This document shows positions 27,890-60,913 of a stretch of 64,000 bases of DNA, in pieces. Position 1 is the stretch's first letter, and each line of letters begins with the position of its first letter. The notes beneath the pieces are model-generated. The model saw only the letters and a list, made by a program, of their open reading frames with translations. It ran no database searches and was not told the origin of the DNA. The stretch comes from Azolla caroliniana (lineage: Eukaryota; Plantae; Polypodiophyta), in the NCBI GenBank assembly GCA_043228905.1, contig JBHGNT010000017.1, forward strand, positions 3,038,001-3,102,000. Reading direction: 5' to 3'. The translations under genes were made by a program, and so were the position numbers.

Positions 27890-28401
27890 CGTGGTGTCTA
27901 ACGCTCGTGACTAACTGCTACCAAATATTAAAGAGGGCAAGTGAGGGAATCGCGGAGACGGTGCAGGTCACATCGCTGATGGCGCGTTCGATCTCCACCA
28001 TCCAAGATGGATAAAAAGCTGACAACGTCTGTCAGAAAGAGCCCGACTCTGCGAAAAGGAGCCCGACTCTGCCACAGGGAGCCCGACTCTGTCAAAAAGG
28101 AGCCCCGCTGTCAGACAGCCTATGCAAGAGGGAGCCCGACTCTGTCAGAAGGAGCCCCGCTGTCAGATCACATCAGTAAGAAGGAGCCCGACTCTGTCAA
28201 AAGGAGCCCGACTCTGTAGCAACAAACATCAAAAACTCCACAAAATTGTAAGTGTACAACAAATATTTTCCCATGGTCAACCAATGGCAATCTCCTCCTA
28301 GCCCGACTAGCACCTCTTTGTAATTTTCCGGAGTGGGATTTGGAAGTGTTTGGGGAGCTGCCAATAAGTTCTTGCGAGATGTCTATTGTTGCACGAGATG
28401 T

Positions 28402-29266
28402 CTATTGTTGCTGCCAATAAGTTCTTGCGAGATGTCTATTTTCGACATACCTTTCCAATATTCTCTCTGCTTCTTTAAGTCGAGACCTTTGATCCCTACA
28501 ATTCGCACGAGGTGCAAACCGACCACTCTCACATATTTCTTGTCGTTGCTTGTACCACTCTATTACCGTTCCTCCTATGCAAGTGCCAGTTTCACTGTCC
28601 CCGATTAAGACATGTAGAAGGTCGGTAATTGATCGGTTTATTCTTCCCCTCAAGGCAGTATACTTGATAAACTGCCAATGTCTTTCCACAATATTGGTAG
28701 TGTCAACATGTCCATAGTTGAACATTCTACCAAACTTGGGCCAGAGTTTCCTCCACACACATGTCAAACCACAAATGTGTTTGGGACCGTTGCCCATTTA
28801 CAACAATCCAAGATTGACGGTCTGTTGCAACCACATTAGTTATGGCATTATATGACGTCCAACATTTATCGATCACTATCGCATTTGGCCTCACCGTGGG
28901 CATCCTTGCGAATATGACTCTCAAACAAGTTTCTAATGCCACTTGCTCATGGTTTGACCCCTTATCAGAACTACAAAGCATGTACCATAATGGGATCCCA
29001 ATTCCCATGGCATTGGGGGCAACTGCGGCATATAATGGTAGCCCAAATTGGTTTGTTTTAAATGTCGAGTCGATTGCCCAAGAGTTGTTTAGGGTCAACC
29101 GCTCACACATTTCCAACATCCATTGATCTTGAAGTATCAAGATAAATGGTTGTATGGCGGGAGATCCTGGTTCACCATGCAGGTAGGGTTGAACATGTGC
29201 CACTTTCCCAAGATCTCGGAGTGCATAGGCATGATGCAAGATCAAAGCCCAATCAACCTTAGTCAT
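28402..29266 (-). pseudogene. MULE DDE transposase remnant (5'-truncated, internally deleted, frameshifted)
   Basis: WAIDSTFKTNQFGLPLY (first D), PNAIVIDK (second D) and, in another frame, VDTTNIVERHWQFIKY (E). The CxxH and insertion domain normally between them is missing. A local duplication at 28357-28440 disrupts the 3' end. Confidence 0.85.
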
Positions 29267-29296
29267 GGCACTCCCGATTTTTAACCTTAGTCATAA

Positions 29297-29490
29297 GATT
29301 GACATTGAGTCTTATTATGTCTTTGAAATGGATTGACATTGAGTCTTATTTATGTCTTTGAAATGGATTGACATTGAGTCTTATTTATGTCTTTGAAATG
29401 GAATGACATTGAGTCTTATTATGTCTTATTATGTCTTTGAATTGGATTGACATTGAGTCTTATTATGTCTTTGAAATGGATTGACATTAT
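29297..29490. repeat. Tandem array, ~35-bp unit GATTGACATTGAGTCTTATTATGTCTTTGAAATG x ~5.5
   Basis: Directly visible inside the MULE. Confidence 0.92.
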
Positions 29491-29634
29491 GTCTTACTAT
29501 GTATTCTTTACGTAAGGACCGAAGCACTCTTTCTATATACTTACTCTTTATTGGCCTTTCTCAAAAACCATTGCCTTCACTACTTGTCAATAAGCTATTA
29601 GTCTTATTCTTTTGACACCCAAAACAATTCCAAT

Positions 29635-29962
29635 ATACAACCAAAATGATTTTCATATACAACCAAAATGAGATTCATACACAACCAAAATGAGATTCAT
29701 ATACAACCAAAATGCGATTCAAAAATTGATTCATATTCAACCAAGATGAGATTCATATACAACCAAAATGAGATTCAAAAATTGATTCATATTCAACCAA
29801 GATGAGATTCATAGACAACCAAAATGATTTACATTGAGTCATATACAACCAAAATGATTTACATTGAGTCATCTACAACCAAAATGATTTACATTGAGTC
29901 ATCTACAACCAAAATGAGATTCATATACAACCAAAATGATTTACATTGAGTCATATACAACC
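29635..29962. repeat. Tandem array, 22-39-bp units built on ATACAACCAAAATGA x ~12
   Basis: Directly visible. The 30-bp variants include ACATTGAGTC, shared with the neighbouring array. Confidence 0.92.
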
Positions 29963-29984
29963 ATTGCAAAATGACTCCACGTAG

Positions 29985-32002
29985 TCATATGCCCAAAGTC
30001 CTTCGTGCCCATTTTGCCATGATTTTCCGAAGGAGCTCCACGTCTTCGAATCCAAACCATTGCTCCTTACCCTACAATTGAAGATGCCATCAACAAAAAC
30101 AAAAACAAATGCTCAAATTCAAATCTCATAAATACTTACAAATTGATCGGACTCAAATCCTTGAATCAACTCCTCGACCAACATGCGAATAGTTTGCATC
30201 ACGTAATACCCACAATCGGTCCCATTAGGTTGGGTTGGGATACGCAATTCATGGATTTGCCTGTTGTTGATGATGCAATGGTCATGTGTCCGACTCGAGA
30301 TATGTCGTATAGCCAAATCACCCAATGTCCGCACCCTGGTAGTCGGATAAATATTTAGTGGATCACAAAATATAATTGGGCTCCTCACCTTGGCATCGAG
30401 ACCCGTAGGAGTTTGTCGCATCTTCAACCAAAGCACCCAATGCCCTGCGTTCAATATTGGAATGAAGACATAATCCCTTTCAGGAACACGAGTGAGTACG
30501 TCTTTGACCTTACCGCCTTGGCCTTCTAGTTGTACCCATAGCAGATCCACAATATGAAACCGCTTGTTGATCTCGGGGGGCAGCGAGTACTCCATCCATA
30601 AATGGAAGAGGGTTATCATCCATGTGGATGCCATCTCCCCTACTGTGATCAACGAACATAGTTGTATCTCCGACAAGAAGACCGCTACATCCAGTCGTCG
30701 GCATGCCACCTGATACCTGTTTATTAGGCTAGATTAGTAACTACTAAACAAACATGATGTTAACTATTGATATCATGCCCCCAGCATAACAACATACCTG
30801 GTGAACTTATTTCTTGCAGAGTTATCCCATGTTTTCGAGATTGTCCCTGGACCAACAAAGACAATCCCAATGTCTGCATCCTCATCTGTGTCAGATGATG
30901 TAATGAACTCCGAATTACATGGGTCCACTTCTTTCCTGCGGATTTGGATTTTCGGCCTCCTTGCTTGTTGCATTGTCGATTCTGACAGTTGGTCTTGACC
31001 ACCATCGATCTCGACATGTGCCTCATCCTTTGGTATGGGAATTCCATGACTCTTACACTACAATTCATACATAAGATTCACACATAATCATAAGTTTTAA
31101 ACTCACATAAGATGCACACAAAATCATAAACCATACTTACATAATCTTTAGACGCATCCGCAATCTTCAACCTCACTTTTGCCATCCTATGCTCCTTTCC
31201 CTCGTCATACCTGGCCATTTGTTGGCTAACGAATTGAGCAATGAAATCAGCCTCCTTGCATGTTCGAAGTGAGTCCGGAGTGGCTTTGAAGATTTTTATT
31301 GCTCTTGTCCTCAACTTCCTCATGTGTGATTGGCGTGATCTATTATACTTGAGCTCCGGATCCAAAAAACGATTTATTGATCGTTGTCTTTCGACATCGC
31401 TGAAGAATGATGTGGCTGTACTCCTCATGGAAGTCGATTGCTCTTCTTCGTCTATCTTTAGCCCTCGAGGCAGTATTACATGGATGCCATGTGCCTTCTG
31501 TAAATGGGCCTCCATGTCCGCTTTTTTTCGAAACCATCTCCCCTCTTTTCTACACGAATCTCCCACAATACAGGTGCGACATTTGATACCTGTTGAGTCT
31601 CTTCCACACTTGAAGAGGGACATAGGGTCCACTACAACAATGGTGTCACATTTGCATTAGAAAAACCCAAAATATGCTTACATCAATAATGATTATAAGA
31701 ATGGACATAAACTCACCATTTACTTTGATATCTTCAACACCTGGACCCACGTCATGCATGGGGTTCGTATCCATGCTCGAGTCTTGAGTAATGATGTTTT
31801 CAGCCTCCGTATCATTGGATTTGGGGCACCTAACACCCTTTCTTACATAAACCCTAAACCAACATTCAAGTTAGCACACAAACATTATTATTTATACACA
31901 ATATAAAGTAGAGAAATGATTCATGCCATACTTCCCTTCATAGGGTATTGTTTCACCCCAATCTGCATCAAAGTCTATGAAGATCTTGGACCGACTAGCC
32001 AT
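29985..32002 (-). CDS. MULE-encoded spliced gene: C2H2-like zinc finger plus Ulp1/C48 SUMO-protease domain
   Basis: Start MASRSKIFIDFDADW (ATG 32002), CRTC...F...HLQKAH finger, protease motifs FIPILNAGHWVL, IIFCDPL and QPNGTDCGYYV (His-Asp-Cys triad plus oxyanion Gln). Last exon GKEQWFGFEDVELLRK...GI* (stop 29985-29987). Central splice junctions not all verified. Confidence 0.75.
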
Positions 32003-32179
32003 CTGTACAAAACATTTTTAGAAAGGCATTCATTACATTACTATTATTTAGGGAGAAAAAACGCAAAGAATGTATACAAGATTTTAGATTTGACATTCAA
32101 ATGTGGGCATAAAAAAGAGCCCAATAATGCATGAATCACATGGGCAAATTCAAGCATTCAAATGTTGGCAAAATCAAAG

Positions 32180-32930
32180 TCATACATGTATTCAATCATA
32201 CACAGCCCATGGGAGATCTTAAATGCACACATACATGTATTAAATCACAGCCTATAGAAGATCTTAAATACACACAAACATGTATTCAATCATACACATG
32301 CACACACATTCGCAGCCCATGGAAGATCTAAAATACACAAATACATGTATTCAATCATACACATGTATACACACACATTCTCAAATAAATGTATTCATCA
32401 TACAACAAACACACACATTCACAGCCCAATGGGAGATCTTAAATGCACACATACATGTATTCAACCATCACACACACAAATGTATTCAATCATACACACA
32501 CAGAAATGTATTCAATCATACACATGTATACACACACATTCCCAAATAAATGTATTCAATCATACAACAAACACACACATTCACAGCCCAAAGAAGATCT
32601 TAAGTACACACATACATGTATTCAACCATCACACACACAAATGTATTCAATCATACACACATACATGTATTCAATCATACACACACAGAAATGTATTCAA
32701 TCATACACATGTATACACGCACATTCCCAAATAAATGTATTCAATCATACAACAAACACACATTCACAGCCCAAAGAAGATCTTAAATACACACATACAT
32801 GTAACCCTAAACCCATCACACACATAAAAGTATTCAATCATACACACACATACATGTATTTAATCATACACATACACACACAAATATATTGAATCATACA
32901 CACATACATGTATTTAATCATACACACATT
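32180..32930. repeat. Complex minisatellite built on CATGTATTCAATCATACAC and CACAGCCCA...AGATCTTAA units (mirror copy at 33650-34400)
   Basis: Directly visible; the source of the spurious His/Thr-rich ORFs. Confidence 0.92.
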
Positions 32931-33051
32931 TATGGTACCTATTAGAAGCAACCCTAAACCTAATAGAAAGAATATGATACCTAATAAAAACCAAAACCTA
33001 ATAGAAGGAATATGATGCCTACCTCTGGACTGCAGGTGCATGCAGTGCGTC

Positions 33052-33151
33052 NNNNNNNNNNNNNNNNNNNNNNNNNNNNNNNNNNNNNNNNNNNNNNNNN
33101 NNNNNNNNNNNNNNNNNNNNNNNNNNNNNNNNNNNNNNNNNNNNNNNNNNN
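33052..33151. other. Assembly gap (100 N)
   Basis: Run of N. Confidence 1.
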
Positions 33152-33390
33152 ACACAAAGTGGAGCCCTTCTTTAATGAGTCGGGCTCCATTTTGTATGAG
33201 CCGGGCTCCCTTTTTACGTGCCGCGCTTTTTCGCGCCTATTCCACATCCATCTTGGACGGTGGAGATCGAACGCGCCATCAGCGGTGCGACCTGCACCGT
33301 CCCTCTCCGCGATTCCCTCATTAAAGAAGGGCTCCCTTGGAGCCCGACTCATTAAAGAATGGCTCCATTTTGTCAAAAGGGAGCCCTTCT
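33152..33390. repeat. Truncated right TIR of the MULE and fold-back junction
   Basis: 33247-33320 is an inverted copy of 27942-28011. It is followed by CTCATTAAAGAAGGGCTCC, the reverse complement of 33161-33179. Confidence 0.75.
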
Positions 33391-34919
33391 CATTCATGTT
33401 CAAGGAAGTATAAAAACCCATTTTCTGTCATTTTCTGTCATTTTCTGTCATTCGTGGGTTTGAGGGTTTAGGGTTTTTGAGCGAGGCGCACCACCTGTCT
33501 GCGAGCACTCGTTGCAAACATCTCCGGTGACGCACTGCATGCACCTGCAGTCCAGAGGTAGGCATCATATTCCTTCTATTAGGTTTTGGTTTTTATTAGG
33601 TATCATATTCTTTCTATTAGGTTTAGGGTTGCTTCTAATAGGTACCATAAATGTGTGTATGATTAAATACATGTATGTGTGTATGATTCAATATATTTGT
33701 GTGTGTATGTGTATGATTAAATACATGTATGTGTGTGTATGATTGAATACTTTTATGTGTGTGATGGGTTTAGGGTTACATGTATGTGTGTATTTAAGAT
33801 CTTCTTTGGGCTGTGAATGTGTGTTTGTTGTATGATTGAATACATTTATTTGGGAATGTGCGTGTATACATGTGTATGATTGAATACATTTCTGTGTGTG
33901 TATGATTGAATACATGTATGTGTGTATGATTGAATACATTTGTGTGTGTGATGGTTGAATACATGTATGTGTGTACTTAAGATCTTCTTTGGGCTGTGAA
34001 TGTGTGTGTTTGTTGTATGATTGAATACATTTATTTGGGAATGTGTGTGTATACATGTGTATGATTGAATACATTTCTGTGTGTGTATGATTGAATACAT
34101 TTGTGTGTGTGATGGTTGAATACATGTATGTGTGCATTTAAGATCTCCCATTGGGCTGTGAATGTGTGTGTTTGTTGTATGATGAATACATTTATTTGAG
34201 AATGTGTGTGTATACATGTGTATGATTGAATACATGTATTTGTGTATTTTAGATCTTCCATGGGCTGCGAATGTGTGTGCATGTGTATGATTGAATACAT
34301 GTTTGTGTGTATTTAAGATCTTCTATAGGCTGTGATTTAATACATGTATGTGTGCATTTAAGATCTCCCATGGGCTGTGTATGATTGAATACATGTATGA
34401 CTTTGATTTTGCCAACATTTGAATGCTTGAATTTGCCCATGTGATTCATGCATTATTGGGCTCTTTTTTATGCCCACATTTGAATGTCAAATCTAAAATC
34501 TTGTATACATTCTTTGCGTTTTTTCTCCCTAAATAATAGTAATGTAATGAATGCCTTTCTAAAAATGTTTTGTACAGATGGCTAGTCGGTCCAAGATCTT
34601 CATAGACTTTGATGCAGATTGGGGTGAAACAATACCCTATGAAGGGAAGTATGGCATGAATCATTTCTCTACTTTATATTGTGTATAAATAATAATGTTT
34701 GTGTGCTAACTTGAATGTTGGTTTAGGGTTTATGTAAGAAAGGGTGTTAGGTGCCCCAAATCCAATGATACGGAGGCTGAAAACATCATTACTCAAGACT
34801 CGAGCATGGATACGAACCCCATGCATGACGTGGGTCCAGGTGTTGAAGATATCAAAGTAAATGGTGAGTTTATGTCCATTCTTATAATCATTATTGATGT
34901 AAGCATATTTTGGGTTTTT

Positions 34920-37622
34920 CTAATGCAAATGTGACACCATTGTTGTAGTGGACCCTATGTCCCTCTTCAAGTGTGGAAGAGACTCAACAGGTATCAAATG
35001 TCGCACCTGTATTGTGGGAGATTCGTGTAGAAAAGAGGGGAGATGGTTTCGAAAAAAAGCGGACATGGAGGCCCATTTACAGAAGGCACATGGCATCCAT
35101 GTAATACTGCCTCGAGGGCTAAAGATAGACGAAGAAGAGCAATCGACTTCCATGAGGAGTACAGCCACATCATTCTTCAGCGATGTGAATTCTGATTCCG
35201 AGGTACCACATATCTCTATTAAGCGTATCTTGTCAACTTTCAGCTGTCAAAATTATCGGATGACAAGCAAATAATCCAGCACCTTATAAAATTTCTCTTC
35301 AACAAAATCTAAAAATAATTTGCAATAATAGCATCCATGCTTAATCATGAAGCTATTCCACTATTTTAAACTCATAACATCTCCACAGTTATGGTGATTT
35401 ACGATCTCAAACTTACACTTCAGATGGAGTGCAGAGGCCTCTAATTTTTTTCATCCTTCAGTGAATGTTTTGTTACCTTCCTTCAATGGGCTTTGAATAA
35501 AACACCATATTAATTTTTTATAGGATAATGTCCAGCTGAGGCCACACATCAACATCTCTCTGTTTTCAGGCTCTCATCTTCTATTAAAGAATATTTTGCA
35601 CAAACAACACAAACGTAATGTTTGCCATCTTCCAAAGGTTGAATTTAATCATTAAATGATGCAGTTGATTCATCAGCATGGCACGCAATTGACTGATACA
35701 TCTATAAATCCATCCTCTATAACTATATATCCCAAATCCAAATAAAAATGCAGTGATACCTTATTTCTTCCTATGAAGACATGAACACATAAAGAAAGTG
35801 CTACCCCTTTAAGCATACCTTATTCTTTTTGGCACAGAGAAAAAATGCAACAGCTGTGAACACAGGACGCCCAAAATCAGCATGCCCTTTGCGTGATTCT
35901 GGCAAAGCAGCTATAAACCTCTTTTTGTACCTTCAATCAAAAATCTATCCATGAGAAGCCAAGCATATATAAAGAGTTGGTTTTTATTCTGACCAAACAA
36001 CCAATACTGAAAAACATACTCCGCCAAAGTCTTATGAACAGAACCTATGAGTCTCACGCAGCCAAACTGAATGGCTAACTCCCGCACATTCAAATCTGGC
36101 CTGAAAAGATGCAATTGAAATTTACTCTATTATTTATATTGGATGCTTTAAAACGTTAAACTGTCCACTCATATATGAAAAACCAACCTTAAACCAAGAG
36201 CATTCTGCAGGTTTGTTAAAGATCTTATGTAAGCCTTTTCTGATAATCCACTTACTCGTACAGCTTTTTGTCGATCAAAATCAACATGCAACCTTACAAA
36301 AAACAATCAATAAGTACGAGAACCAAAGATCAATCCATCTTGTTCTTTCACCATTGCCAGAATATGATATTAGAAATGTGCACTAGTTGCTTATTCACAT
36401 CAATGTTATTCTTGCATCATGCAAGGGCTATAATCACAGCAGAATACAAGTAAAACCTGGTTGAGATGATGTAGAGGATACTGATGCATTACATTCATAG
36501 TGACCATGCCCCTCGTCCTTTATTTGAAATAGAGTAAATTACCTTAATTGAGTAGCAAAGGCCTCTCAAATTTGATTACCTTTTTGACAACTTGCTTTGT
36601 GTCATAAAGTTATCCTAAGCAGCAATATAAATTTTTATATTCTTCCAACATTACTTCCATCATATATTATCAGTTATATACTTCACTAATGATAAGCATT
36701 GCTTCCACTTTACGGGCCTAAGTTCCAATCAATCCACATAAATTATTTTGCAACATTGTAAGAGATGAGAAGTAAATAGCAATTAGAATCATCTATGGCG
36801 TTCATTAAGTTATTTGAAATCAGCAATTTCAAAGGTCATATGCTATCTTTTCCGATTTTTGGCAAACACAACTGCAGTATTCCTATAGACACGCCATAAT
36901 ACCATAGGGTTTCCAAAAAAATATCTTGCACGTTACAAGATATCATTAACTATCCGCAATATCTCAAAATTTCTATTTCACGTGTCTTTAGACCATTCTA
37001 AACGATAGCATAAAGCATGTTAGCGTGTTTAAATGGGAGATTTCATTGATAAGTCTGGGTGACTATATCTTATACCAAGCTTTAAGAATAATTCTAAACA
37101 ATACTATATAAGTCATTCCGGATTAATTATATAGAAAAGTATCACTATGTTAGGACCGCAGACACATTGATCGCCTTTTGGTCGTTTCTAAACGAAATCA
37201 TAAACCGTGTTGGCACGAAAGAATACACTGCATCATTAAGGTCAAGACTGAAAGCTACCTTTTATTCATATGTTTTGTCACTATACACAAAATCGTAAAT
37301 GTACGTTCATATGCGCAAATAGAAGCTTTATAAAGAAAAGCAAGAAAAATAGGTGTGTATGAAGACGAAAAACACTTACAGAGAACACGCGATCTCGAAA
37401 CATAAGACGGCCTTGCAGACCTCCCCCTTTGTGAAAGAAAAAACCAGAAATAGCAGAGTGAGATTTTAAAGATCGAGATGGATAAAGAAGAGAGACGCAA
37501 AAGATACTAACCAAACCAAAGGCAGATGAGTCGAACTGTAGTTTACTGAGGCGTTCGAGCTCCTGCGCTTTTCTGATCACGGCAGGAAATCCAGACATGC
37601 CGAGCCTGTCGCGCAAATCCAT
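34920..37622 (-). pseudogene. ORC6: Truncated ORC6 copy (exons 1-6, 173 aa) fused in frame to 86 codons of antisense MULE sequence
   Basis: ATG at 37622 with exons and splice sites preserved. Exon 6 reads LKVDKIRLIEICGTSESEFTS, then continues LKNDVAVLLMEVDC...SHLH* to the stop at 34920-34922. Confidence 0.8.
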
Positions 37623-40600
37623 TGCCAAAGAGAGAAGAAGAAGCAGAAGGAGAAGACGATGACTGCGTCGACGCCCCACCGAATATTGCAAGAAGGAATC
37701 GCCATAGCTGTGTTACGTGTATGTGAAAATCTGGCGGGAAAACAAGGGAAAGGAAAGATTTCAGACTCGAGTTTCTCTCCTTTGTGTTTGTGTGTGTTTG
37801 GGGCCAGGGGAGAAGGGGCGGGGGCCAAAGGGGGAGGGAGAGAAGAGAGTTGTGGCAAGAACTTTGTTGAAGGTGCTCGAAAGTCCCGAGATAGAATGGC
37901 ATAACTATTCGCCTTGCAAGCTAGATATTCAGTGTAGACTTTGACAAAGATGAGGATGGTTGATTGAATTTTGGCGTAGGGCATACAGTATAGTAACTGT
38001 CATAACCAAGTTCCAACAACTATGCGGTCGATTCGGTGTAGAGCATGCTTGTATTAATTATTGCATACCATCTACAGTTGAAGGGGTTTTAGGACAGTTG
38101 ATTCTTTAGACATCTACCTTTTTTGTACATGTTGCTTATTAAGATATGCAAGCATGTATAAATGATAAAGGAGTGTGTATTTATTCATATTTAAATATAA
38201 CCATTTTAGTTTGTAAAACCTCGTAGATGTCTAAAGAATTTTATTAGATACATGACATCGAATCACATTTTCCCGTAGGGATTAACATAATTGATGCCTT
38301 GGAGTGTTGCACTTCCTTAGCTCACTACCACGTCCCAAAGGGTTGCCTTCCTCTCAATGGGCTAACTAGATTATTGGGGAACGTCACTCCCCAATGGGTA
38401 CGATTATGTCATACATCAACTTATAAAAGCACTTAACTTGTTACGGGCATGACCATATAATATCCCGTGATGAGAATTTACCGTAGTATTCTATGCATGT
38501 GGATAAGTGCGAGGGCTAAACGAGAGTGTAAAGAAGGGGAGGATTACTTTTAATCCTCGAGATTAAGACAACCTGTTAGGCCAAGTGTGAACTTGCTTGG
38601 GACCCTTGGGTCTTGTTATAAATATGAGGCCTAGCTACCCTCATTTGATCATCACTTGACTACATCGAGACTCTGTTTTGTGGTGGGTCAGCTCCTATAG
38701 TGAGCATGCCAGCACCATGTACGACTTGACGCCACGACGGTGGTATGGGACGCTGATCGAGGCTCGAGTCTGTCTCGATCCCTTCACTCAGGGATAGTCG
38801 GGTGGATTGATACCCTTCTTTCTCTCTCTCCTTTCTTGTTTCATATATCTTTTATCCTTATCAAATGCTTATGTTAGACCATCGCTCTAACATACGCCAT
38901 CAACCACTTAAGTTAATACAAATTAAGACACACTTAATCACGTGTTAGTCTCGATTAAATGGACAATCATTGTATATGAAACATAAGAGGTGTCTCAATT
39001 AAATAGATATTTATTAAAAAGAAATAACATATATATCTCAAATAATTAGGTGAAAACACTATACTAATGGCGCTTACTGGATGTAGAGGTTAGAGAATAA
39101 GGACCAAAAGGTAACCCCAAAGTTATGGCTCACGATGGCCCCTTTGATGTTACGGCTATTGCCCTTCCTTTTATACAAATTGGAAACCCCAGAAGTTCCC
39201 TTTCACATAACAAGCCCATTGGTCATTGATGTTCATACAACCAATAGTTGAAATTGCAATTTTTAGAGCCTTGTATAGTTTATTACAACTAAAAAAACAT
39301 GACATTATTTTCCTTGATAGACATGTGCATCCAATTTATGGTATGCATTATTATTTTTTCGCAATGACAAACCTTAATATCTTGCTCCATGTTGTTATCT
39401 GGATAAGACATTGTTGAGTTAAAATATATATGATATTCTTGAAGTCTGTTATCACGACATAACAATTCAGAGTCATATACCATACACTTTTCAAGCATTA
39501 GAAGAAACAAATCGCACTTTTCTAACAAGAAGGAGAATGTTTAGTTCTACTTGGTCGTGGATGTCAACTTTTGACACGACATTGGTTTGACCTTGGTATG
39601 AACCATGTGCTTTCCAAGTGGACATGGCTTGCCTGGTTAGTGGTTAATTCATTATTGGGAGAAGTGCTAAAAGTCGGGGTTAGTTTGCCATTTTATTGAT
39701 CGAATAACACATATTTATATTCGAGTTTGGGTTGATCATTTGGAAAATAATATTAACTTTGACACGTTTGGGGAAATAGATAAGACTTAGGGGAAATTTC
39801 AAAGTTTTTCCTTTTTCTCAATATGCTAATTTTATTTTGTGTTTGATATTCTTAACATTATATTATGTCCATCAATGTCGTGGACCGTGGTTGTTCGATC
39901 TTTCTCATTAGCCAAAATTATTGGAGAATTTCCCTATTGCTAAAATGTTATCAATTCGAATGTAAAATTTCATCTATAATTGTTTCTTGAACTTCTTTTC
40001 CAACGTTTTCATAAGTATGTATTCTTACAAATCCCACAGAAGCAATGGATTCCCATGGACTTTCTATCTATTTATTTTTCTTAGTCTTGTAGTATCAAAT
40101 AAGAACAATTTGGCCGTTGCAACTATAAAAGGTATCCATGGCACACTATATCTTAGTTTTTTTGTACCCAATTTTCTGCATCACTTGCATGATGTGCATT
40201 TTATGATTGATGCAATGGATACTTTCAATTTAGAATGCATTGGTCATACTATCCTAATTATAGGCCTCGAGAATCTCTTAATCTCTAATGCACATCTAAC
40301 TCAACAACATACAATGCGTAACAATATAAGCTAGTCTTTGGTCGTCAATAAAGGAGTTTACACATGTTTTATATGGAAGTATAAATATAAAATTGTCATT
40401 GATTATTTATAATGTTTTGGATAACACACTAATTGCATACTTGTGCAAATTGGAACTTTGTTTGTATAAACATTCAAAATGTGAGTAAATTTGTTTTGAT
40501 TATTGTCCAGTTTGACTATAGTCAAAATAAATTGCTATCTTATTTCATTGTTGGTTTGGGGGTTATATATAAGTTGTTAGCTACAACTCATTTGGAATTT

Positions 40601-41526
40601 AGTTAGCAACCATGGTGTTTCACAGATACTTCCTAATTATTGCCACATGCATTCACCGTGACAATTCTAATCGAGTAATAAGAGTAATTCATTTATTAGT
40701 TCTAGGTGTGAATGCAATAGATGGTTAATTAATTTGCATGAAGAACATTGTAGATGAAGGGAAAGCCATATTCAACGAAAAGAACCATCAACAATGAGAT
40801 TAACAAAATCATGTCTAATGAGAATATGATAAATTTTATAATGTGATGTTAATCTTCTTTAGTGAGAAAATGATTTAACTATGGAATGTAATTCTAACAT
40901 GCCATTGACAAATGAGTGAAAAAAAAAGCTCATGGATGGTGCACTCTCCAAATCTAAATTTAAGTCCCCCTTATTGCAAAAACATTTGGTAGTAACAAAA
41001 AGGCATCAAAAGCTACGAAGAATAATGTGATTTCTACAAGCTCTAATGGAACATATATGTTGTTAATAATATAAAGCAACATGTTTGTTTAATTATAAGG
41101 GAGAAACATGTAATTCATGTTCTAAGGTTCAAAACAGTAATACAACTTTGTCATGGGTATTGGATATATCTAAATAATCATATATCATGCACTCAACCTC
41201 ATGACACTCATGGAGAGAGTTGGAACTTCTCTATTTGAAAACAACATATGAATCAAATGTGCAATAGCAATAGACGATAGACAAACAAACACATGTCAGC
41301 AAACATTGAATTGAATTGATCTATAATGATTTACATACATTTTCATCTTTGGGTGCATGGTGGTTGACATGTGTTGGTATGTATATCTATGACTAGATCC
41401 TCGAATCCTTGAGAGTACTTGCTTATATTATGGTACATAGCACGCCAAGTTCCAACCATCCATGGGAATAATGTCTCACAAATTGAGTAACTCCAAAACA
41501 ATCACACTATACAAGAAAGTTCATCA
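35181..41526 (-). repeat. 6.3-kb inverted duplicate of 53677-60028 (ORC6 upstream region plus exons 1-6)
   Basis: Paired ORFs (37281-37691/57527-57937, 35911-36114/59095-59298, 39289-39528/55654-55893, 39987-40334/54854-55207) are near-identical. Scattered substitutions and several indels show the copies are not identical. Confidence 0.97.
37734..37741 (-). promoter_or_regulatory. E2F site retained in the duplicated ORC6 promoter
   Basis: GCGGGAAA, which is TTTCCCGC on the minus strand, ~115 bp upstream of the ATG. Confidence 0.7.
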
Positions 41527-41806
41527 CACTATACAAGAATGACAGCGGGGCTCCTTCTGACAGAGTCGGGCTCCCTCTTGCATAGGCTGTCTGACAGCGG
41601 GGCTCCTTTTTGACAGAGTCGGGCTCCCTGTGGCAGAGTCGGGCTCCTTTTCGCAGAGTCGGGCTCCTTCTGACAGACGTTGTCAGCTTTTTATCCATCT
41701 TGGACGGTGGAGATCGAACGCGCCATCAGCGATGTGACCTGCACCGTCCCTCTCCGCGATTCCCTCACTTGCCCTCTTTAATATTTGGGAGCAGTTAGTC
41801 ACGAGC

Positions 41807-53124: not shown

Positions 53125-56100
53125 CTTGCGCAGGGAATTCAAACTGTCCGCTGGGAAACAAAATGAAGTAAACGATCATGTGACTGGGTCAAGAATTCAT
53201 GGAATTTAGACAATAACATGTGATTACCGTTGCTGTTATTGAAATTAAAGTGAGGAACATGGAACATGAAACAAAATTTTGCTTTTAGCAGCGTTAATTA
53301 AGCTGAAATATTGGATCAACTGCTCTCAAGGTGTGAAAGAAGGGAATGTTGTAAATGAAAAGTGAGGAATGGATGAATGAAAGTTTTTCTGGGTGAAGGC
53401 GATATGATGGAAAGAGAACTGGTTACCTGTGGTGGAGCTCGGCATGTAGATCGATCTGCCACTGTGGAGCTTGGAGAAGAGAAACGGGAACACGCGATAG
53501 GATCGATGTAGCCCCTAATATTCTTCCGCACTTTCTTCAGGCTGTGTCTATGTGTGCATGTTTTTCTGCTTTTAAACTTTTAACTCTGCAAAATAAAGAC
53601 ATAGAGACAAAATATAATCCCATATACTTTGCCTATAGTTATAAATATGTACATACATAGCCTTCTAACGATAAGTTGATGAACTTTCTTGTATAGTGTG
53701 ATTGTTTTGGAGTTACTCAATTTGTGAGACATTATTCCCATGGATGGTTGGAACTTGGCGTGCTATGTACCATAATATAAGCAAGTACTCTCAAGGATTC
53801 GAGGATCTAGTCATAGATATACATACCAACACATGTCAACCACCATGCACCCAAAGATGAAAATGTATGTAAATCATTATAGATCAATTCAATTCAATGT
53901 TTGTTGACATGTGTTTGTTTGTCTATCGTCTATTGCTATTGCACATTTGATTCATATGTTGTTTTCAAATAGAGAAGTTCCAACTCTCTCCATGAGTGTC
54001 ATGAGGTTAAGTGCATGATATATGATTATTTAGATATATCCAATACCCATGACAAAGTTGTATTACTGTTTTGAACCTTAGAACATGAATTACATGTTTC
54101 TCCCTTATAATTAAACAAACATGTTGCTTTATATTATTAACAACATATATGTTCCATTAGAGCTTGTAGAAATCACATTATTCTTCGTAGCTTTTGATGC
54201 CTTTTTGTTACTACCAAATGTTTTTGCAATAAGGGGGACTTAAATTTAGATTTGGAGAGTGCACCATCCATGAGCTTTTTTTTTCACTCATTTGTCAATG
54301 GCATGTTAGAATTACATTCCATAGTTAAATCATTTTCTCACTAAACAATATTAACATTACATTATGCAATTTATCATATTCTCATTAGACATGATTTTGT
54401 TAATCTCATTGTTGATGTTCCTTTTCGTTGAACATGGCTTTCCCTTCATCTACAATGTTCTTCATGCAAATTAATTAACCATCTATTGCATTCACACCTA
54501 GAACTAAGAAATGAATTACTCTTATTACTCGATTAGAATTGTCACGGTGAATGCATGTGGCAATAATTAGGAAGTATATGTGAAACACCATGGTTGCTAA
54601 CTAAAATCCAAATGAGTTGTAGCTAACAACTTATATATAACCCCCAAACCAACAATGAAATAAGATAGCAATTTATTTTGACTATAGTCAAACTGGACAA
54701 TAATCAAAACAAAAATGTTTATACAAACAAAGTTCCAATTTGCACAAGTATGCAATTAGTGTGTTATCCAAAACATTATAAATAATCAATGACAATTTTA
54801 TATTTATACTTCCATATAAAACATGTGTGAACTCCTTTATTGACGACCAAAGACTAGCTTATATTGTTACGCATTGTATGTTGCTGAGTTAGATGTGCAT
54901 CAGAGATTAAGAGATTCTCGTGGCCTATAATTAGGATAGTATGACCAATGCATTCTAAATCAAAAGTATCCATTGCATCAATCATAAAATGCACATCATG
55001 CAAGTGATGCAGAAAATTGGGTACAAAAAAACTAAGATATAGTGTGCCATGGATACCTTTTATAGTTGCAACGGCCAAATTGTTCTTATATGATATTACA
55101 AGACTAAGAAAAATAAATAGATAGAAAGTCCATGGGAATCCATTGCTCTGTGGGATTTGTAAGAATACATAATTATGACAACGTTGGAAAAGAAGTTCAA
55201 GAAACAATTATAGATGAAATTTTACATTCGAATTGATAACATTTTAGCAATAGGGAAATTCTCCAATAATTTTGGCTAATGAGAAAGATCGAACAACCAC
55301 GACATTGATGGACATAATATAATGTTAAGAATATCAAACACAAAATAAAATTAGCATATTGAGAAAAAGGAAAAACTTTGAAATTTCCCCTAAGTCTTAT
55401 CTATTTCCCCAAACGTGTCAAAGTTAATATTATTTTCCAAATGATCAACCCAAACTCGAATATAAATATGTGTTATTCGATCAATAAAATGGTAAACTAA
55501 CCCCGACTTTTAGCACTTCTCCCAATATAATGAATTAACCACTAACCAGGCAAGCCATGTCCACTTGGAAAGCACATGGTTCATACCAAGGTCAAACCAA
55601 TGTCGTGTCAAAAGTTGACATCCACGACCAAGCAGAACTAAACATTCTCCTTCTTGTTAGAAAAGTGCGATTTGTTTCTTCTAATGCTTGAAAAGTGTAT
55701 GGTATATGACTCTGAATTGTTGTGTCGTGATAACAGACTTCAAGAATATCATATATATTTTAACTCAATAATGTCTTATCCAGATAACAACATGGAGCAA
55801 GATATTAAGGTTTGTCGTTGCAAAATAATAATAATGCATACCATAAATTGGATGCACATGTCTATCAAGGAAAATAATGTCATGTTTTTTTAGTTGTAAT
55901 AAACTATACAAGGCTCTGAAAATTGCAATTTCAACTATTGGTTGTATGAACGTCAATGACCAATGGGCTTGTTATGTGAAAGGGAACTTTTGGGGTTTCC
56001 AATTTGTATAAAAGGAAGGGCAATAGCCGTAACATCAAAGGGGCCATCGTGAGCCATAACTTTGGGGTTACCTTTTGGTCCTTATTCTCTAACCTCTACA

Positions 56101-57476
56101 TCTAGTAAGCGCCATCAGTATAGTGTTTTCACCTAATTATTTGAGATATATATGTTATTTCTTTTTAATAAATATCTATTTAATTGAGACACCTCTTATG
56201 TTTCATATACAATGATTGTCCATTTAATCGAGACTAACACGTGATTAAGTGTGTCTTAATTTGTATTAACTTAAGAAGTCTTTGAGGCTTAAGTGGTTGA
56301 TGGGGTATGTTAGAGCGATGGTCTAACGTAAGCATTTGATAAGGATAAAAGATATATGAAACAAGAAAGGAGAGAGAGAAAGAAGGGTGCCGATCCACCC
56401 AACTATCCCTGATGAAGGGATTGAGATAGACTCGAGCCTCGATCAACGTCCCATACCACTGTCGTGGCGTCAAGTCGTACATGGTGCTAGCATGTTCACT
56501 ACAAGAGTTGACCCACCGCGAAACAGAGTCTCGACGTAGTAGTCAAGTGATGATCAAATGAGGGTAGCTAGGCCTCATATTTATAACAAGACCCAAGGGT
56601 CCCAGGCAAGTTCACACTTGGCCTAACGGGTTGTCTTAATCCCAAGGATTAAAAGTAATCCTCCCCTTCTTTACACTCTCGTTTAGCCCTCGCACTTATC
56701 CACATGCATAGAATACTACGGTAAATTCTCATCACGGGATATTGTATGGTCATGCCCGTAACAAGGTAAGTGCTTTTATAAGTTGATGTATGACATAATC
56801 ATACCCATCGGGGAGTGACGTTCCCCAATAATCTAGTTAGCCCATTGAGAGGAAGGCAATCCACTAGGACGTGGCAGTGAGCTAAGGAAGTGCAACACTC
56901 CAAGGCATCAATTATGTTAATCCCTACGGGAAAATGTGATTCGATGTCATGTATCTAATAAAATTCTTTAGACATCTACGAGGTTTTACAAACTAAAATG
57001 GTTATATTTAAATATGAATAAATACACACTCCTTTATCATTTATACATGCTTGCATATCTTAATAAGCAACATGTACAAAAAAGGTAGATGTCTAAAGAA
57101 TCAACTGTCCTAAAACCCCTTCAACTGTAGATGGTATGCAATAATTAATACAAGCATGCTCTACACCGAATCGACCGCATAATTGTTGGAACTTGGTTAT
57201 GACAGTTACTATACTGTATGCCCTACGCCAAAATTCAATCAACGATCCTCGTCTTTGTCAAAGTCTACACTGAATATCTAGCTTGCAAGGCGAATAGTTA
57301 TGCCATTCTATCTCGGGACTTTCGAGCACCTTCAACAAAGTTCTTGCCACAACTCTCTTCTCTCCCTCCCCTCCCCCCCCCCCGCCCCTTTGGTCCCTGC
57401 CCCTTCTCCCCTGGCCCCAAACACACACAAACACAAAGGAGAGAAACTCGAGTCTGAAATCTTTCCTTTCCCTTGT

Positions 57477-57484
57477 TTTCCCGC
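57477..57484 (+). promoter_or_regulatory. Canonical E2F binding site in the ORC6 promoter/5' leader
   Basis: TTTCCCGC (consensus TTTSSCGS) ~115 bp upstream of the ATG of a replication-licensing gene. A second E2F-like TACGCCAAAA lies at ~57224. Confidence 0.75.
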
Positions 57485-57595
57485 CAGATTTTCACATACA
57501 CGTAACACAGCTATGGCGATTCCTTCTTGCAATATTCGGTGGGGCGTCGACGCAGTCATCGTCTTCTCCTTCTGCTTCTTCTTCTCTCTTTGGCA

Positions 57596-60500
57596 ATGGA
57601 TTTGCGCGACAGGCTCGGCATGTCTGGATTTCCTGCCGTGATCAGAAAAGCGCAGGAGCTCGAACGCCTCAGTAAACTACAGTTCGACTCATCTGCCTTT
57701 GGTTTGGTTAGTATTTTTTGCGTCTCTCTTCTTTATCCATCTCGATCTTTAAAATCTCACTCTGCTATTTCTGGTTTTTTCTTTCACAAAGGGGGAGGTC
57801 TGCAAGGCCGTCTTATGTTTCGAGATCGCGTGTTCTCTGTAAGTGTTTTTCGTCTTCATACACACCTATTTTTCTTGCTTTTCTTTATAAAGCTTCTATT
57901 TGCGCATATGAACGTACATTTACGATTTTGTGTATAGTGACAAAACATATGAATAAAAGGTAGCTTTCAGTCTTGACCTTAATGATGCAGTGTATTCTTT
58001 CGTGCCAACACGGTTTATGATTTCGTTTAGAAACGACCAAAAGGCGATCAATGTGTCTGCGGTCCTAACATAGTGATACTTTTCTATATAATTAATCCGG
58101 TATGACTTATATAGTATTGTTTAGAATTATTCTTAAAGCTTGGTATAAGATATAGTCACCCAGACTTATCAATGAAATCTCCCATTTAAACACGCTAACA
58201 TGCTTTATGCTATCGTTTAGAATGGTCTAAAGACACGTGAAATAGAAATTTTGAGATATTGCGGATAGTTAATGATATCTTGTAACGTGCAAGATATTTT
58301 TTTGGAAACCCTATGGTATTATGGCGTGTCTATAGGAATACTGCAGTTGTGTTTGCCAATAATTGGAAAAGATAGCATATGACCTTTGAAATTGCTGATT
58401 TCAATGGACGCCATAGATGATTCTAATTGCTATTTACTTCTCATCTCTTACAATGTTGCAAAATAATTTATGTGGATTGATTGGAACTTAGGCCCGTAAA
58501 GTGGAAGCAGTGCTTATCATTAGTGAAGTATATAACTGATAATATATGATGGAAGTAATGTTGGAAGAATATGAAAATTTATATTGCTGCTTAGGATAAC
58601 TTTATGACACAAAGCAAGTTGTCAAAAAGGTAATCAAATTTGAGAGGCCTTTGCTACTCAATTAAGGTAATTTACTCTATTTCAAATAAAGGACGAGGGG
58701 CATGGTCACTATGAATGTAATGCATCAGTATCCTCTACATCATCTCAACCAGGTTTTACTTGTATTCTGCTGTGATTATAGCCCTTGCATGATGCAAGAA
58801 TAACATTGATGTGAATAAGCAACTAGTGCACATTTCTAATATCATATTCTGGCAATGGTGAAAGAACGAGATGGATTGATCTTTGGTTCTCATACTTATT
58901 GATTGTTTTTTGTAAGGTTGCATGTTGATTTTGATCGACAAAAAGCTGTACGAGTAAGTGGATTATCAGAAAAGGCTTACATAAGATCTTTAACAAACCT
59001 GCAGAATGCTCTTGGTTTAAGGTTGGTTTTTCATATATGAGTGGACAGTTTAACGTTTTAAAGCATCCAATATAAATAATAGAGTAAATTTCAATTGCAT
59101 CTTTTCAGGCCAGATTTGAATGTGCGGGAGTTAGCCATTCAGTTTGGCTGCGTGAGACTCATAGGTTCTGTTCATAAGACTTTGGCGGAGTATGTTTTTC
59201 AGTATTGGTTGTTTGGTCAGAATAAAAACCAACTCTTTATATATGCTTGGCTTCTCATGGATAGATTTTTGATTGAAGGTACAAAAAGAGGTTTATAGCT
59301 GCTTTGCCAGAATCACGCAAAGGCCATGCTGATTTTGGGCGTCCTGTGTTCACAGCTGTTGCATTTTTTCTCTGTGCCAAAAAGAATAAGGTATGCTTAA
59401 AGGGGTAGCACTTTCTTTATGTGTTCATGTCTTCATAGGAAGAAATAAGGTATCACTGCATTTTTATTTGGATTTGGGATATATAGTTATAGAGGATGGA
59501 TTTATAGATGTATCATTCAATTGCGTGCCATGCTGATGAATCAACTGCATCATTTAATGATTAAATTCAACCTTTGGAAGATGGCAAACATTACGTTTGT
59601 GTTGTTTGTGCAAAATATTCTTTAATAGAAGATGAGAGCCTGAAAACAGAGAGATGTTGATGTGTGGCCTCAGCTGGACATTATCCTATAAAAAATTAAT
59701 ATGGTGTTTTATTCAAAGCCCATTGAAGGAAGGTAACAAAACATTCACTGAAGGATGAAAAAAATCAGAGGCCTCTGCACTCCATCTGAAGTGTAAGTTT
59801 GAGATCGTAAATCACCATAACTGTGGAGATGTTATGAGTTTAAAATAGTGGAATAGCTTCATGATTAAGCATGGATGCTATTATTGCAAATTATTTTTAG
59901 ATTTTGTTGAAGAGAAATTTTATAAGGTGCTGGATTGTTTGCTTGTCATCCGATAATTTTGACAGCTGAAAGTCGACAAGATACGCTTAATGGAGATATG
60001 TGGTACCTCGGAATCGGAATTCACATCGGTTTGTCTCTTGTACTTGATAATTCTTTTGCCCACATGATTATGTCGAAGAGACATTTGAGCAAGCATTTTT
60101 TTTGCAGGTAGCAACATCTATGATAGATCTTTGTTTGGACATGCTAGGTGTTCAGAAGGAAAAGAAAGACTCAAAGTCTGTGAAATGTAATAGAGGTAGA
60201 CTTTCTCATATGTTCCAAAACTTATTTAACTATGATATATGCTTACATGCTACATAACCTTTAATGTGAGGGAAAACTTGAAAATGTTCCGCCATATTTT
60301 CTTTGTTTTCCTCCAATGTCTCTGAGTTTCTTTATTTTTTTATACCCACACTTGCATATAACACAATTCTCACTTCATAGATTTGCTAGATGCTTTGCCA
60401 AACAAGAGGAAGCATGAAGATGACTATTCAGATAGTGATATTGATTCAGCTGATGAAGATGGGCCTGAGGTATGTTGGTTATCCAAACATCTTTGCAACC

Positions 60501-60913
60501 TTTCATTTTTTCTGGTGGTACATCTTCATTATATATCATGGAATTTATTTTCTTTACCAGGTCCCAGGAATGGACCCTTCAAAGAAGAAATCCAAGGCTT
60601 CATATGAAGCGTGGAAATCATCGATTATGACAGCCAAGGGAACAACAAAATTAGCTGCAGGTAAAAAATGAATAATTGCGGTGTTAAGATTAATCGTGAG
60701 GTTGCATCCACAAAATATAATATTAGTAAGCAGAACATTTGTATATATGTACATAATTATAGTCTGCATTTGTTCTTGAAGATGGTTATAAATGTGTGAC
60801 TGCTGTTAAAGTAAAGATGCTAAATTTCAAACTTGCTTGCAGAATTGACCAAGAAAACCAAGCAATCCACTTTATGTTTCTTGAAAGCCCCAAGTACATC
60901 AGCATGTGCATGA
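57596..60913 (+). CDS. ORC6: Origin recognition complex subunit 6, 10 exons, ~288 aa
   Basis: Exons 57596-57706, 57792-57838, 58917-59021, 59109-59189, 59279-59390, 59966-60028, 60108-60195, 60381-60469, 60561-60660 and 60843-60913 join in frame. Plant ORC6 motifs QFDSSAFGLGEVCKAVLCFEIA, LNVRELAIQFGCVR, ADFGRPVFTA, LKVDKIRL and YEAWK. Confidence 0.95.

Follow-up and report, generated by a model that had tools for sequence, protein, structure and literature searches.

A duplicated and inverted ORC6 locus

The 64,000-nucleotide (nt) stretch of the genome of the fern Azolla caroliniana considered here (GenBank assembly GCA_043228905.1, contig JBHGNT010000017.1, positions 3,038,001 to 3,102,000 of the forward strand; hereafter the window) is plant-like, with a G+C content of 33-43%, and contains two versions of the gene for ORC6, an origin recognition complex (ORC) subunit. 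One is a complete native gene on the plus strand. The other, which is our main subject, is a minus-strand copy (35181-41526) that matches the native locus at 53677-60028 in inverted orientation, over 6.3 kb and with 97.5% identity including gaps, and that lies inside a composite Mutator-like element (MULE). In window coordinates the features of the two versions are:

57596-60913, plus strand: native ORC6, the parent of the copy; 10 exons with canonical splice sites, 288 amino acids, YEAWK in exon 9
37623-41526, minus strand: captured ORC6 upstream DNA, 3904 nt, homologous to native 53677-57595
37734-37741, minus strand: E2F consensus TTTCCCGC, 112 nt before the ATG, a motif match only
37512-37622, minus strand: exon 1 of the copy, ATG at 37622; intron-1 joint found in a native-gene RNA contig
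37380-37426, minus strand: exon 2 of the copy
36188-36292, minus strand: exon 3 of the copy, with the ORC6 N-terminal domain PF05460
36020-36100, minus strand: exon 4 of the copy, with positions 1-23 (the start) of the second cyclin-like domain PF21913
35819-35930, minus strand: exon 5 of the copy, with PF21913 positions 24-58 and GGC>GGG at 35885
35181-35243, minus strand: exon 6 of the copy, with PF21913 positions 59 to about 79 of 87; donor of intron 6 lost
34920-35180, minus strand: 86-codon read-through and stop; the opposite strand holds the first coding exon of a MULE zinc-finger-like open reading frame (ORF)

A preliminary description of this locus had proposed that the copy retains 3.9 kb of upstream DNA, an E2F site and exons 1 to 6 with their splice sites, and the coordinates, the motif and the AG/GT dinucleotides all bear this out. 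The E2F element TTTCCCGC is identical in the native locus (57477-57484, plus strand), and the native counterpart of the 3.9-kb upstream block has no ORF of note. Every AG/GT site of introns 1 to 5 is kept, and these five introns correspond to exact joints in spliced native-gene RNA contigs from two public runs, in which native ORC6 splicing, that of exon 6 to exon 7 included, is visible. We scanned for Pfam domains exon by exon and used the joined coding sequence for translation and for the substitution counts. Exon 3 on its own matches PF05460 (E = 5.2e-5; 23.9 bits, the cut-off being 22.2), and exons 4 to 6 cover about 79 of the 87 profile positions of PF21913, the remainder having been cut off by the break. 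Exons 7 to 10 are missing, and with them the linker, the C-terminal helix and the YEAWK of native exon 9, in agreement with the earlier statement that the copy lacks the YxxWK tail.

The 5' untranslated region (UTR) and proximal promoter of native ORC6 are polymorphic among samples (37623-37660 and 37795-37850; native 57369-57595), the variants including a 6-nt AGAAGA insertion on an RNA contig and a 53-nt skip in one DNA run; a 16-nt C-rich indel separates copy and parent in the promoter/5' UTR region.

Beyond exon 6 the reading frame of the copy stays open for 86 codons into antisense MULE sequence, so that 173 ORC6 codons are extended to a 259-residue chimeric frame with its stop at 34920-34922, exactly as the preliminary description had it. 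An intact version of the MULE exon within the window already has a 139-codon antisense ORF (31241-31660), of which the tail is the C-terminal 86 amino acids, and the other two frames of the MULE arm stop at once; the in-frame extension is therefore a one-in-three accident of phase. The sole public protein match to the chimeric last exon is the 139-residue antisense ORF of another intact MULE copy (P0001), which is identical at 86 of 86 tail residues and unrelated before them; this search covered proteins of 59-187 residues, a range that the 259-residue model itself would escape. The tail contains serine, leucine and cysteine and matches no Pfam family. On the opposite strand the same break has created a reciprocal chimera:

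34948-35274, plus strand: MULE zinc-finger-like ORF cut after about 80 amino acids and continued by antisense sequence of ORC6 exon 6 and intron 5

The intact version of this MULE ORF, with 184 amino acids, is found at 31078-31632 on the minus strand. A MULE-side transcript over 34948-35274 would be antisense to ORC6.

The host transposon

The copy sits within a 13.9-kb composite MULE (27903-41806), which is bounded by terminal inverted repeats (TIRs) and carries the remains of transposon genes in its left half:

27903-28165, plus strand: left TIR
41540-41806, minus strand: right TIR, 267 bp, 97.4% identical to 27903-28165
28402-30709, minus strand: MULE transposase-domain and Ulp1-protease-domain (ULP) ORFs of the left half (PF10551, E = 2.1e-9; PF02902, E = 1.2e-8)

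Both of these ORFs are fragmentary. With the Pack-MULEs, reportedly described by Jiang et al. in 2004, the element shares long TIRs of the Mutator type, with a PF10551 transposase domain inside, and an interior derived from a cellular gene whose parent lies elsewhere (native ORC6; the Pfam ORC6 domains are in exons 3 to 6). It departs from them in a trait that is typical though not strictly defining, namely non-autonomy: because transposase and ULP ORFs are present, we describe the locus as a Pack-MULE-type capture in a composite MULE and not as a classic Pack-MULE. The element presumably resembles the ULP-carrying MULEs of the KI-MULE or Kaonashi type, which likewise have an Ulp1 protease (C48) domain ORF beside the transposase; this family match is one of Pfam domains only and not of phylogeny.

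The outer flanks of the element are both (ATGT)n-type microsatellite, with strand and orientation alike on the two sides, which is the expectation for a single insertion. In the DNA runs the depth over the MULE part at 34700-35180 is 84-1445, against about 19-25 over ORC6, placing the MULE family at roughly 5-50 times single-copy depth; it therefore appears to have tens of copies.

Junctions and the mode of capture

The two ends of the captured block, and a nearby gap that bears on how they are read, are:

35181-35186: 6-bp microhomology (ACATCG in the ORC6 sense), present both where exon 6 ends and in the MULE sequence
41527-41539: 13-nt filler between the captured DNA and the right TIR, by direct reading
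33052-33151: 100-N scaffold gap, at the centre of a palindrome (see below) and 2 kb from the exon 6 junction

The break had earlier been placed exactly at the last base of exon 6, with removal of the GT donor. The loss of the donor stands, as the dinucleotide at that place is CT and not GT; the position is exact only up to the 6-bp microhomology. ACATCG occurs once in the 7.3-kb donor region, at 60023-60028, and since this sole donor occurrence ends exon 6, a break at the exon border can be understood without invoking RNA. At the other end, the filler yields a second copy of a 17-nt donor string that is single in the native locus (41527-41560 versus 53677-53710). Templated filler of this kind, like the microhomology and the proximity of the parent, points to template-switch or gap-filling repair. 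Both a bias towards parents in cis and microhomology at breakpoints have been reported as hallmarks of gap-filling capture by TIR transposons (PMC8277862).

From the junctions we infer a template-switch mechanism in which repair synthesis primed from the right TIR would have taken the region upstream of ORC6, about 12 kb distant, as its new template, proceeded through 6.3 kb as far as exon 6 extends, and then returned into the MULE interior at the donor's only ACATCG.

We examined whether the junction could be a product of assembly, such that the truncated copy would be a mis-assembled second native ORC6 haplotype or a chimeric contig start by the gap. Several observations are compatible with this. 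The 100-N gap is only 2 kb away, and the first contig ends in sequence that recurs, exactly reverse-complemented, in the interior of the second. No junction-spanning contig was recovered from two public DNA runs (organisms A and B), the exact junction 25-mer, unique within the window, is absent from metagenome contigs, and the base of the assembly at 35148, 33 nt from the junction, is found on no contig of either DNA run. Furthermore, the organism-A run has two ORC6 versions at split depth (8.8 and 11.1 versus 19.4), one of them with the copy-type 9-nt insertion and copy-type promoter, and two of its contigs that cease to fit at 35181 both run on into intron 6, as would a native haplotype resembling the copy. 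However, the runs differ from both the copy and the native gene of the window at 37578 and hence do not come from the assembled individual. Misassemblies arise at long repeats, whereas here both ends of the block join MULE sequence through microhomology or templated filler; the same-orientation microsatellite flanks also fit one insertion. Because there are two independent repair-type joins to MULE sequence, and because one and the same contig carries both the copy and native ORC6, we hold with high confidence that the junction is real, and consider an assembly artefact very improbable. The organism-B run has a single native-type ORC6 on one 5.8-kb contig and no second version; the copy thus appears absent from at least one other sample and is not fixed.

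Divergence and age of the copy

Copy and parent differ by 87 single-nucleotide polymorphisms (SNPs) and 10 indels in total. The upstream block accounts for 71 SNPs in 3880 aligned nt (1.8%) and the gene part for 16 SNPs in 2.4 kb (0.66%). Four of the differences fall in the 519 coding nt, three being synonymous and one a Met/Ile exchange. These are the GGC/GGG, GTC/GTT, TCG/TCA and ATG/ATA pairs that had been listed previously; the isoleucine (codon 161), however, cannot be counted as a change of the copy, since native alleles carry it too. Thus, the organism-B DNA contig (5.8 kb, of native structure and running into intron 6) has the letters of the copy at 35217 (the Ile codon) and 35235 and agrees with it at roughly ten of the 16 gene-part SNPs, and the Ile codon is also present on an RNA contig in which exon 6 is joined to native exon 7. 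Most of the differences between copy and parent are therefore polymorphism among native ORC6 alleles, the neighbouring native gene in the assembly being the more divergent haplotype.

What is private to the copy amounts to three of the 16 gene-part differences (35443, 35693 and 35885; about 0.12%), among which GGC>GGG at 35885 is the only coding change and is synonymous. As only these three changes have accumulated in the gene part, the capture must be recent, and this recency together with the single private coding change leaves no power on selection; the copy is too young for selection to have tested it. The comparison of nonsynonymous and synonymous substitution rates (dN/dS) between the copies, a check that the preliminary description had called for, gave a ratio of 0.10 (binomial test, nominal P = 0.04). 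We rejected this as evidence of selection on the copy, because at least two of the three exon 6 differences recur on native alleles in other samples and so belong to the native lineage: the surplus of synonymous differences stems from polymorphism of the native gene and not from constraint on the copy. A GC-to-AT excess in the copy, as a footprint of methylation, was not found in the upstream block (33 versus 30).

Expression and coding potential

Taken as a whole, this is probably a young, DNA-level, Pack-MULE-type capture to which the ORC6 locus contributed its 5' two-thirds, and which is most likely silent or weakly transcribed and gives rise to no functional protein. As judged from its sequence features, the copy should be structurally able to be transcribed, given its native promoter haplotype, E2F motif and intact splice sites. 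Its location within a transposon and next to a seemingly perfect palindrome lowers the odds of transcription, and the native promoter raises them; among rice Pack-MULEs about 40% are transcribed and 9% have evidence of translation (PMC5861414). In two RNA-like runs, stored as contigs, no RNA contig bridges the junction, the transcripts seen being those of native ORC6 splicing and those continuing within the MULE. We did not count this against expression, because the RNA runs are probably from plants lacking the copy.

Several points weigh against this reading. Silence is itself something that we infer. The intact 3.9-kb native promoter exceeds that of most Pack-MULEs and favours transcription, and as the putative last exon would contain the stop, nonsense-mediated decay is no obvious barrier to the chimeric message. 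As to the insertion itself, it is the assembly alone that provides the junction, and no identical 9-mer is present directly at the TIR ends as a target-site duplication (TSD; 9-11 bp in Pack-MULEs). The best candidate agrees at 8 of 9 positions, and this only if 13 extra nt are assigned to the left end, a match that is uninformative in microsatellite flanks; indeed, no convincing TSD is readable because both flanks are microsatellite.

The preliminary description had seen in the copy an expressed, E2F-regulated ORC6 variant without the ORC3-binding tail, acting either as a DNA-binding competitor (a dominant negative) or as a new gene. Such a variant would draw on an intact promoter with an E2F motif and on five intact introns, would largely keep both TFIIB-like domains and has no nonsynonymous change private to the copy; translation of the kind recorded for 9% of rice Pack-MULEs also gives it some precedent (PMC5861414). 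Drosophila Orc6 that lacks the C-terminus persists as a stable protein in insect cells but fails to bind ORC1-5 (PMC3791464), and by analogy the chimeric protein, if made, is predicted to remain outside ORC1-5. It would hence be "uncoupled", as the preliminary description put it, but not obviously dominant negative: a protein unable to enter ORC is no obvious poison of it. In addition, about 8 profile positions are missing from the end of the second cyclin-like domain, the 86-residue tail is a domain-less antisense product, and neither chimeric RNA (in the two RNA runs) nor chimeric protein (among public proteins of 59-187 residues) was found. The apparent lack of the copy in at least one other sample, in keeping with its not being fixed, and a single private coding change that gives no power to detect selection likewise speak against an established new gene. 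We therefore regard an ORC6 variant of this type as improbable. If the copy is transcribed, a role for the protein is less plausible than effects at the level of RNA, such as antisense to the MULE or transcription running on into the palindrome.

The apparent palindrome and possible RNA-level effects

Directly downstream of exon 6, in the direction of ORC6 transcription, the captured block adjoins one arm of a large inverted repeat of MULE sequence:

31394-33051: left arm of the 1658-nt inverted repeat (MULE interior), ending exactly at the scaffold gap
33529-35186: right arm of the 1658-nt inverted repeat, 100% complementary to 31394-33051, adjoining exon 6

With the 100-N gap at its centre, this palindrome is either real and the cause of the break in the assembly, or a scaffolding problem.

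This arrangement raises an alternative in which the captured promoter would read antisense through the MULE and on into the palindrome, giving double-stranded or hairpin RNA and small interfering RNAs that silence the high-copy family; convergent transcription from the MULE side could also make antisense to ORC6 exons 5 and 6. Given correct scaffolding, a transcript from the captured promoter would begin as antisense to the MULE gene and, if not terminated, would then pair back with the sense arm. The geometry recalls that of Mu killer, with an inverted MULE duplication, a host promoter pointing in and a centre that resists sequencing (PMC3440606). Here the arms are 1658 nt long, fully identical and placed immediately beyond exon 6, and the plus-strand reciprocal ORF extends into antisense ORC6. 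An antisense partner would also have a target, for spliced sense MULE transcripts over 34725-35183 are present in two RNA runs, and the family stands at roughly 5-50 times single-copy depth. On the other hand, no transcript of the copy was seen in these runs, and AT-rich sequence past the stop may terminate transcription early. Moreover, the arms lie on different contigs joined by the 100-N gap, so that the palindrome depends on the scaffolding. We thus see an RNA-level role as unlikely, though somewhat less so than a protein variant. Less probable than an RNA-level role in general is its specific form, in which the E2F-controlled captured promoter would drive transcription through exon 6 and into the palindrome in dividing cells, the locus thereby becoming a naturally arisen trigger of the Mu killer type for the silencing of its own MULE family, possibly also dampening native ORC6 through the shared exons. 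Were this the case, a transposon would, through capture of a host promoter, have assembled the means of its own silencing.

Between the arms, at 33244-33326, lies a segment resembling the TIR core, about 95% identical to the terminal repeats and without their outer 45 nt or so, which is flanked by imperfect local inverted repeats. Both arms contain tandem arrays with a period of about 170 nt and 70-83% identity (32173-32930 and 33652-34407), which give His/Thr/Tyr-rich mechanical ORFs. Elsewhere in the window, a 255-nt unit at 1740-2249 is present as two tandem copies with 98% identity and a weaker third partial copy.

Comparison with known systems

Gene capture by Pack-MULEs is a known phenomenon with thousands of chimeras, and the present case is notable for its size, its youth and the legibility of its junctions; the Mu killer-like arrangement downstream is, as a hypothesis, its one unusual aspect. 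If transcribed, the locus would be a very young and readable example of a transposon duplicating a whole promoter and most of an essential replication gene, and could show whether such captures start out as protein variants, as sources of antisense or hairpin RNA, or as nothing. Nothing indicates an effect on replication licensing.

At the protein level, the closest parallels are truncated Drosophila Orc6 and the Tyr-to-Ser helix mutation of Meier-Gorlin syndrome (PMC3791464), in which, as in the copy, the TFIIB-like domains are kept and the Orc3-tethering C-terminal helix is lost. Those alleles, however, were engineered or come from patients and concern the sole gene, whereas here a full native ORC6 lies next door, and unlike them the copy has a clipped second domain and a foreign 86-residue tail.

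At the RNA level the comparison is with Mu killer, which is an inverted partial duplication of MuDR with a host promoter reading in and an unsequenceable centre (PMC3440606; Slotkin et al. 2005 as cited there). The two would have in common a rearranged Mutator element, an inverted duplication (here an apparent one) of the element's own 5' gene region, a host promoter able to read into it and a centre that resists sequencing. They differ in that Mu killer duplicates the mudrA side and has its host promoter flanking the element, while the ORC6 element duplicates the side of the zinc-finger/ULP gene and has captured the promoter inside.

As a transposon, the ORC6 element shares with the Pack-MULEs of rice, maize and Arabidopsis a host gene fragment between Mutator-type TIRs, a parent elsewhere in the genome and a chimeric ORF (PMC5861414). 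Typical Pack-MULEs are short and non-autonomous, whereas the ORC6 capture is unusually long (6.3 kb), taking in the whole promoter and five introns, and its element, for which no clear TSD was found, keeps transposase- and ULP-derived ORFs as well as an apparent internal perfect palindrome. In its manner of origin it comes closest to the Pack-TIRs, which were studied in animals: both have the parent in cis within 15 kb, microhomology at the breakpoint and a single copy (PMC8277862), to which the ORC6 capture adds a templated filler.

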